In this document: piece by piece, positions 125-1,311 of the stretch | How positions within the stretch are numbered: position 1 is the first letter of the stretch | How the letters are laid out: each line of letters starts with the position of its first letter | Notes under the pieces: model-generated | The model's input: the letters and a program-made list of their open reading frames with translations, nothing else | What the model was told of the DNA's origin: nothing | Database searches by the model: none | Assembly (NCBI GenBank): GCA_047495785.1 | Contig: JBLDXI010000013.1 | Location: forward strand, 2,604,001 to 2,668,000 | Origin: Lepidodermella squamata | Lineage: Eukaryota; Animalia; Gastrotricha | DNA: 64,000 bases | Reading direction: 5' to 3' | Translations under genes and position numbers: made by a program

Positions 125-1311
125 CTACGGTCCACCACCACCACAGCAGCCTCCCTGGCTTCCACCGGTCGCCGCGCCTGCATTAGCAGTAAGCGAAACA
201 CCTCCTGTTTGCTGTCGCGACCCATTGTCTGATTTAGGTAGGCGTTTGGCTGAAAGCGGAAATCACATCGGATTAGCAGCAAGCAATTGCAAGGTAACAT
301 AAATATCATATCGCAACAAGAGACAAAAAAATACTTTTAATATAGAACGCGCGCAGATGTTTGACGCTGAGCAAGCGCGTTTAATCATCTGAAAACCGCA
401 AGCTAAATTGTCTGTTTTCTAGCAAGCACAATTCTTTTTGCCGGGCTCATCAGACTCGCCCTGATTACCGCTGCGATCAGGGAGTTTGTAAGAGCCCGAT
501 GCACCTGGGGGGGCTTTTTGAGAGTCCCGAGGAAGACGACCAGCTGGCATTGCGGGTAACACATCAACAATCTAATTAGAACTAGGTCTCAACAATACTC
601 ACCGATAGCCAAAAAGAGTTCGTTGACGTTTAAGGCTGTTTTTGCGGAGGTTTCCATGAATAGCAAGCCATTTTCATCAGCATAAGTTTTGCCCTCCTAA
701 AAAGAGGTAAAATTTTAACGGCCACCTTGAATTACAAACAATTTATACATCTGTGTCGACTGTTCTTTTCTGAGCCATATCAGCCTTGTTGCCAGCGAGG
801 GCTATGACGATGTTTGGAAGTGCTTGTTTCTGCAACTCACGTACCCAGCTCTTTGCTCGTTGAAATGAGTCCTGTAATCAAAACTGAGCTGCAGCAACTT
901 CTTGAATTAAGTAAAATCGTTTACTTGACTTGTGATGTCGTATACTACGATTGCTGCTTGGGCTCCTCTGTAGTACATTGGAGCAAGAGAGTGATACCGT
1001 TCCTGACCAGCTGTATCCCAAATCTAAACAACACGCAACTAATAAGAGCGCGGAAATTCTCAAATAGATAATTTAACCTCAAATTTGACTGTTACTCCGT
1101 CATCGAGTACGACTGTTTGCGTCAAAAATGCAGCTCCGATTGTGCTTTCTTGAAATTCGTGGAATTGCCCTTTAACAAATCGTAACACAAGCGACGATTT
1201 CCCGACAGCAGATTCGCCCAGTAAAACCAATTTGAATTGAAATGTTTTAGCTTGAGATAATGTGCCGTTGGATCGGCCCGCTGCACCAGCGGTGGGAGCT
1301 CTGGCGGCCAT
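125..1311 (-). CDS. Rab5: Rab5 GTPase, paralogue 1. Exons 1311-1078, 1023-925, 871-749, 696-603, then alternative last exon 543-419 (ends KKNCAC*) or 249-125 (ends GGCCGGGGP*)
   Basis: [10 protein letters not shown]-loop, [10 protein letters not shown] effector loop, [26 protein letters not shown] and ETSAKT motifs, joined in frame by GT-AG introns of 54, 53, 52 and 59 bp. Both terminal exons splice in phase 1 and contain a Cys pair. Confidence 0.95.

Follow-up and report, generated by a model that had tools for sequence, protein, structure and literature searches.

We found that a Rab5 gene of Lepidodermella squamata joins one donor (position 603) to either of two terminal coding exons, exchanging the whole hypervariable tail together with its Cys motif. 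The gene is one of two Rab5 paralogues in the window, the 64,000-nt stretch of genomic DNA analysed here. Either reading of it yields 224 aa, and the isoforms differ solely in their final 41 residues. We consider it likely that this is a genuine alternative-last-exon Rab5 gene giving two 224-aa proteins.

To describe the gene, the minus strand of positions 1-3000 was read and spliced by script, giving a compact five-exon reading from 1311 to 125 in which the introns between coding exons 1-4 are 52-54 nt long (Table 1). The nucleotide-binding and Rab-family motifs, P-loop included, are all intact in the spliced translation, each motif being identified as is established for Rab sequences. The gene was assigned to Rab5 because the top of the PDB list for exon 1 consists of Rab-5A/B/C alone: the 16 best matches are all Rab-5A/B/C (E 1e-26 to 2e-23), and the next is plant RABF2b. 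A comparison of exon 1 with representative proteins returned mostly mispredicted outliers, and its matches in a set of 5.8 billion proteins were generic Rab5 fragments only, with no close relative in that set and the window's own ORF absent from it too. A first-pass annotation, made from the sequence, had proposed one donor at 603 followed by two phase-1 acceptors that each open a frame of 125 nt, and the spliced reading bears this out. The proximal acceptor at 543 reads ..caatgccag/CT and the distal acceptor at 249 reads ..ccgctttcag/CC, and from each the frame runs 125 nt to a TAG. The translation likewise agrees with the proposed tail ends, a terminal CXC for the proximal exon and a CC five residues from the end for the distal exon, and with the Rab5 'AxxLP' helix end said to open both exons, which is A-x-R-L-P in each. 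The ATTAAA at 341-336, followed by a T/GT-rich tract, is also present as described.

Table 1. Coordinates of the first Rab5 gene and of the second Rab5 paralogue in the window.
Feature	Position	Strand	Description
Coding exon 1	1078..1311	-	ATG at 1311; 78 aa; N-terminal variable part, P-loop, switch I
Coding exon 2	925..1023	-	33 aa; switch region
Coding exon 3	749..871	-	41 aa; NKAD guanine-binding motif
Coding exon 4, final G-domain exon	603..696	-	Ends ..ELFLAI + G; donor G/gtgagt after 603, phase 1
Proximal alternative last exon, coding part	419..543	-	41 aa including split codon; AGRLPRD....PGKKNCAC; stop TAG 421-419
3´ UTR of proximal exon	316..418	-	ATTAAA 341-336; presumed cleavage/poly(A) region near 316
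Distal alternative last exon, coding part	125..249	-	41 aa; AKRLPKSD..GGCCGGGGP; stop TAG 127-125
3´ UTR of distal exon	1..124	-	Runs past window start
Second Rab5 paralogue	7542..8519	+	Exons 7542-7733 and 7784-8102; distal tail exon 8377-8519
Candidate hidden proximal tail exon, second paralogue	8149-8249 or 8218-8249	+	In-phase frame ..SSPAKKGCC then stop; read from sequence

The RNA evidence consists of assembled contigs from four runs (X1, X2, X4 and X6) out of the six found, with word depth serving as a rough measure. The library type of X1 is recorded as a guess, and its coverage pattern is that of cDNA: the two introns that precede the tail exons have zero coverage, as does everything upstream of 1350, and spliced joints are also seen at two of the three upstream introns (exon 2/3 and exon 3/4). 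X4, labelled as a freshwater metagenome, is a library of poly(A) RNA. Both predicted junctions, 603>543 and 603>249, were found in these contigs, the two together in X1, the distal one in X6 and the proximal one in X4; it is thus not the case that a single junction is all that is ever observed. The distal joint is carried in X1 by two contigs with a summed word depth of 473, and in X6 by one 417-nt contig that runs from the last part of exon 3 through exon 4 and the distal exon into the 3´ UTR, past the window start. The proximal joint is carried in X1 by one contig of 256 nt (word depth 209) that has no mismatch and one homopolymer gap, with 29 nt on the exon-4 side and an extension to 316. 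In X4, a contig ~5% divergent from the window runs through exons 2, 3 and 4 and then 26 nt into the proximal exon, with the two letters at the joint replaced in such a way that its codon goes synonymously from GCT to GCC (both Ala). Among the upstream joints, 1023>1078 was seen in X2 and 870/871>924/925 in X1, X4 and X2, and the joints of exon 3 to exons 2 and 4 are present in both X1 and X4.

Support for the proximal joint amounts to a single contig each in X1 and X4, and these contigs are short. One odd X1 contig, moreover, joins leader-like letters to 1224 in the wrong orientation, and the 603>543 joint might by the same token be a chimeric de Bruijn contig, an artefact of assembly. We consider this very improbable, however. 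The joint falls exactly at a GT..AG pair and in the correct phase, it was found independently in two runs from different studies and in two sequence variants (X1 at 100% identity, X4 at ~95%), and exon 4 and the proximal exon have no repeat in common that could bridge the graph. A second X4 contig, ~15% divergent, covers exons 3-4 (603-870), with 16 replaced letters at the junction and ~65 letters beyond 603; it probably comes from a more distant relative.

Both tail exons have stops and RNA-covered 3´ UTRs. The X1 proximal contig ends at 316, 20 nt past the ATTAAA, and 251-315 is without RNA coverage. We infer a proximal cleavage/poly(A) site near 316, matching the contig end, where a poly(A) tail would presumably be added. 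The distal 3´ end is outside the window, with X1 and X6 contigs covering 1-249 plus ~65 nt beyond position 1 and an X4 contig covering 28-100. Among the RNA contigs examined, none was reported to join the proximal exon onward to the distal one, which argues that the proximal exon is terminal and not a cassette. At position 325, in a T-run of the proximal 3´ UTR, the X1 contig is one T shorter than the window, which could be a polymorphism or an assembly slip.

In the mechanism that we propose, all transcripts would have exons 1-4 in common, and with them the whole G domain up to ..ELFLAI. Use of the weaker proximal acceptor at 543 would be accompanied by cleavage and polyadenylation ~20 nt past the ATTAAA (341-336). 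Alternatively, splicing would go to the stronger acceptor, the distal one at 249, and remove the 353-nt stretch in full as an intron. The outcome would be either the distal AKRLPKSD.. tail, with five residues after its CC, or the proximal tail, with KK beside a terminal CAC. Pyrimidines occupy 11/20 of positions -22..-3 at the proximal acceptor versus 14/20 at the distal acceptor; a poorer tract at the proximal site is the usual pattern for a proximal last exon whose use competes with splicing out of the entire interval.

We asked how often such a frame arises by chance, by shuffling the 353-nt interval from the donor to the distal acceptor 4000 times. An AG-started ORF that was in phase, reached 30 aa or more and closed with a Rab geranylgeranylation motif turned up in 56/4000 shuffles, and in 1/4000 when an x-x-R-L start was also demanded, figures that are optimistic given that the criteria were picked after the data had been seen. 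The hidden proximal exon is clearly not a random open frame.

The two tails differ in what they resemble. The distal tail aligns with full-length Rab5 proteins in the database, having the AKKLPKSD.. start and the Cys pair, and its similarity to the second paralogue's distal tail is significant (z 4.8). It is the ancestral, canonical Rab5-type tail. The canonical status is based on the database proteins; the human RAB5A tail included in the tail comparison was a provisional sequence that served as a lead. Beyond its AxRLP start and Cys end, the proximal tail has no resemblance to anything in the protein set, the metagenome contigs or the PDB sequences. As a 40-aa query it had zero shared words with the 5.8-billion protein set, a result of little weight given that full-length proteins fall outside the query's length window. 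No PDB sequence matched either tail, and no metagenome contig matched when the tail was used as a protein query. A search with a degenerate DNA pattern spanning the joint of exon 4 to the proximal exon had one match, which was rejected: a GC-rich bacterial contig (L001) that encodes ..ELFFAIAGRLPWE.. by chance. We take the proximal tail to be a lineage-specific sequence that has kept the A-x-R-L-P helix end. The two tail exons match in length (125 nt), phase and A-x-R-L-P start, but the global alignment of the two tails is no better than that of shuffles (z 1.1, p 0.13). With length, phase and first residues equal, the tandem exon duplication that the first-pass annotation implied is a possible origin of the tails, though the alignment does not show it.

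The proximal tail (..KKNCAC, then stop) has a basic KK beside its CAC, the classic Rab end that is doubly geranylgeranylated and carboxyl-methylated. This end fits XXCXC among the listed Rab geranylgeranylation motifs, which are XXXCC, XXCCX, XCCXX and CCXXX, together with XXCXC and XCXXX (PMC5902227). The distal ..CCGGGGP, with five residues after the CC, fits no listed motif (PMC5902227, PMC3504004). Since the distal CC lies outside the listed RabGGTase motifs, the difference between the tails may be in whether lipidation takes place, or in what way, rather than in the address. About 18-21 residues into each tail there is a hydrophobic patch (distal V-S-L, within GVSLT; proximal Y-K-L), which may be the CIM that binds REP. 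The spacing from patch to Cys is 14-17 residues in both tails and so meets the need for a CIM-to-Cys linker of at least 9 residues for REP/RabGGTase (PMC5902227).

A rival reading is a switch between an anchored and a poorly anchored Rab5 instead of between two addresses, in which the CAC form would be normally prenylated and cycle on and off membranes while the distal form would be weakly, singly or otherwise lipidated and be soluble or cycle differently. Published motif lists permit three residues at most after CC (PMC5902227, PMC3504004), and the distal tails of both paralogues have CCGG plus extra residues while in both candidate proximal tails nothing follows the CAC or CC. On the other hand, RabGGTase recognises Rabs via REP and not by the motif itself (PMC5902227), so extra residues may be tolerated, and the distal form has the canonical Rab5 tail and the higher word depth, which would be odd for a crippled form. 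We therefore regard such a switch as rather unlikely, though of some weight.

Our preferred reading remains a single gene giving two Rab5 proteins, both of which would presumably be translated and may both be prenylated, with any difference in membrane behaviour being predicted from the tails. The first-pass interpretation, one core with two interchangeable membrane addresses, is plausible. It is tempered by the view that membrane-localised GEFs are the better supported determinant of Rab targeting, the tail contributing for some Rabs only (PMC5902227). Different lipid anchoring or membrane cycling of the two forms would most likely be the consequence, in preference to a wholly different compartment.

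We compared the gene with Rab5 loci on contigs from other eukaryotes (L002, L005/L006, L007, L009, L010, L011 and two tandem genes on L012). An identical phase-1 intron right after ..(A/D)I-G is present in 8/8 of these Rab5 genes, and all seven whose tail is on the contig have a single canonical tail exon. In several of them the tail intron is just 63-94 nt, leaving no room for a hidden exon. Because the intron is common to other eukaryotes whose genes show one tail, we take the intron to be ancient and the second tail to be a lineage feature. In the search for the second exon elsewhere, which had been suggested along with the original prediction, the ~5%-divergent relative in X4, alone among the sequences examined outside the window, uses the proximal joint, whereas the seven other-eukaryote Rab5 genes are single-tailed. 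The L012 contig (10001-12010), from an unrelated eukaryote, has its two Rab5 paralogues in tandem ~1.3 kb apart, both with the same phase-1 intron and each with one tail exon; the tails end ..KLNCCGTN and ..KLKCCDVN.

The proximal form could nevertheless be a by-product, in which a cryptic acceptor and a fortuitous ATTAAA generate a minority transcript that has no selected function and the distal Rab5 is the sole working protein. No relative of the proximal tail was detected, and its likeness to the distal tail is not significant; such an exon is absent from the seven Rab5 genes of other eukaryotes, and the proximal acceptor is the weaker of the two, all in favour of an accidental exon. An accident would not readily account, however, for exactly 41 open codons that begin A-x-R-L-P and stop right after a KK-preceded CAC (chance ~1/4000), for retention of the joint with a synonymous change in the ~5%-divergent relative, or for the like candidate exon in the second paralogue. 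The word depth of the proximal form, a rough measure, is also a sizeable share of the distal depth (209 versus 473-698), and we conclude that the proximal form is a sizeable minority and not a trace. On balance, a by-product seems improbable.

The second paralogue is also a Rab5, its exon 2 scoring 4e-45 with Rab5 versus ~1e-29 with Rab22/31 in PDB. A Rab5 G-domain tree left the paralogue split undated, with the second paralogue on a long branch. In its last intron (8103-8376) there is an in-phase hidden frame with a stop at 8247-8249, which can be reached by two routes. The acceptor at 8149 would give 33 aa starting with GERL, while the acceptor at 8218 would give 10 aa and has a branch-like TACTAAT 24 nt upstream. 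A hidden ORF of this kind appeared by chance in 16/4000 shuffles, and in 1/4000 if it also had to start x-x-R-L. Between this candidate exon and the distal exon of the second paralogue there is no canonical AATAAA or ATTAAA. In the distal tails of the two paralogues (128-150 and 8481-8516), the first gene has 3 residues after CCGG and the second gene has 9. This places the distal Cys pair 5 or 11 residues short of the C-terminus, a spacing that departs from the listed Rab motifs.

We tentatively raise the possibility, which we rate as less probable than not, that each of the two Rab5 genes has a second tail exon hidden in the ancient phase-1 intron, and that having two tails is a long-standing design under selection in the lineage. 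If this were so, each Rab5 would be made as a form ending in CAC or CC next to KK, a classic doubly prenylated anchor (methylated in the case of CAC), and as another form, with its CC buried 5-11 residues before the C-terminus, that would be lipidated differently or hardly at all. Splicing would then set how Rab5 binds and leaves membranes, which has not been described for any Rab5.

A survey of 167 human Ras-superfamily genes reported C-terminal alternative splicing in KRAS, CDC42, HRAS, Arl6 and TRIM23, and further in Rab8A, Rab28, Rab35, Arl8B and Rab15, with Rab5 absent from the list (PMC9882654). No paper describing a Rab5 tail switch or C-terminal splice variant came up in literature searches, in agreement with the initial impression that the arrangement is unreported for Rab5. 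The same survey singles out KRAS and CDC42, the precedents originally cited as K-Ras4A/4B and Cdc42, in that only CDC42 behaves like KRAS in yielding two distinct membrane-targeting tails (PMC9882654). Like the Rab5 gene here, KRAS4A/4B and the CDC42 isoforms combine one G domain with either of two terminal exons that have different hypervariable regions and lipidation motifs. KRAS and CDC42, however, belong to the Ras and Rho families and undergo CaaX-type prenylation (plus palmitate or a polybasic stretch), whereas prenylation of a Rab is of the REP/RabGGTase type. The alternative exons of KRAS are homologous, while homology of the tails is not demonstrable here (z 1.1). The gene also differs from KRAS and CDC42 in that the proximal exon has its own putative poly(A) signal, which would make it a true alternative last exon. 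Among Rabs, RAB28 has three isoforms that differ at the C-terminus, two of which carry a CAAX motif (PMC7326575), and it resembles the Rab5 gene, as do Rab8A, Rab15 and Rab35, in being a Rab with alternatively spliced C-termini (PMC7326575, PMC9882654). The splice variants of Rab8A, Rab15, Rab28 and Rab35 differ from those of KRAS and CDC42 in not providing two distinct membrane-targeting tails (PMC9882654). RAB28, unlike the Rab5 here, is an atypical, farnesylated ciliary Rab. The mechanism, an alternative last exon swapping the lipidated tail of a GTPase, is thus known in kind, and Rab5 is a family member for which it had not been described.

Vertebrate RAB5A/B/C, which as far as is known all end in CC plus two residues, are like the isoforms here in having near-identical G domains and different hypervariable tails. 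Their tail diversity comes from separate genes, whereas here it comes from the alternative last exons of one gene, with CXC versus CC plus five residues. Splicing in this animal supplies tail diversity for which vertebrates rely on gene duplication. In plants, ARA7/RHA1 and ARA6 (RABF1) are Rab5-type GTPases whose lipid anchors differ in kind and place and which act on different endosomal routes, ARA6 having an N-terminal acylation anchor without a C-terminal Cys motif. The plant Rab5 group, unlike the gene here, consists of separate genes, and no splicing is known to be involved.

Rab5 is the master switch of early endosomes, and how much the hypervariable tail and prenylation motif contribute to the membrane behaviour of Rabs is a long-running question. 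A natural Rab5 pair in which the G domains are identical and the tails wholly different (a CXC end versus an internal CC) is a ready-made experiment for that question. The conserved phase-1 intron at the exact boundary between G domain and tail permits the tail to be swapped as a module. Gene models with one tail for the Lepidodermella squamata genome miss an isoform.

Several other features of the window were noted. At the 5´ end of the first Rab5 gene, an X1 contig covers 1224-1327 and continues into 21 non-genomic letters (..GAATTTGATTTGTGTCTA) joined at the acceptor AG at 1327-1326, so that the 5´ UTR begins at this AG, 15 nt ahead of the ATG. The 21 letters are absent from the entire 64-kb window, even with 2 mismatches allowed, and a literature search for a published counterpart of the leader found none. 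Their absence from the window and their position at the 1327/1326 acceptor fit trans-splicing, and the sequence looks like a trans-spliced leader.

Elsewhere, on the minus strand at 31538-32989, an ORF of 483 aa contains a reverse-transcriptase domain (RVT_1, E 5e-20) and is probably a retroelement. Long uninterrupted ORFs are also found on the minus strand at 10482-17589, one of 1402 aa with PHD and FYRN domains (MLL/trithorax-like) and a second of 512 aa with a nuclear-receptor C4 zinc finger. That ORFs of such length run uninterrupted shows an intron-poor metazoan genome.
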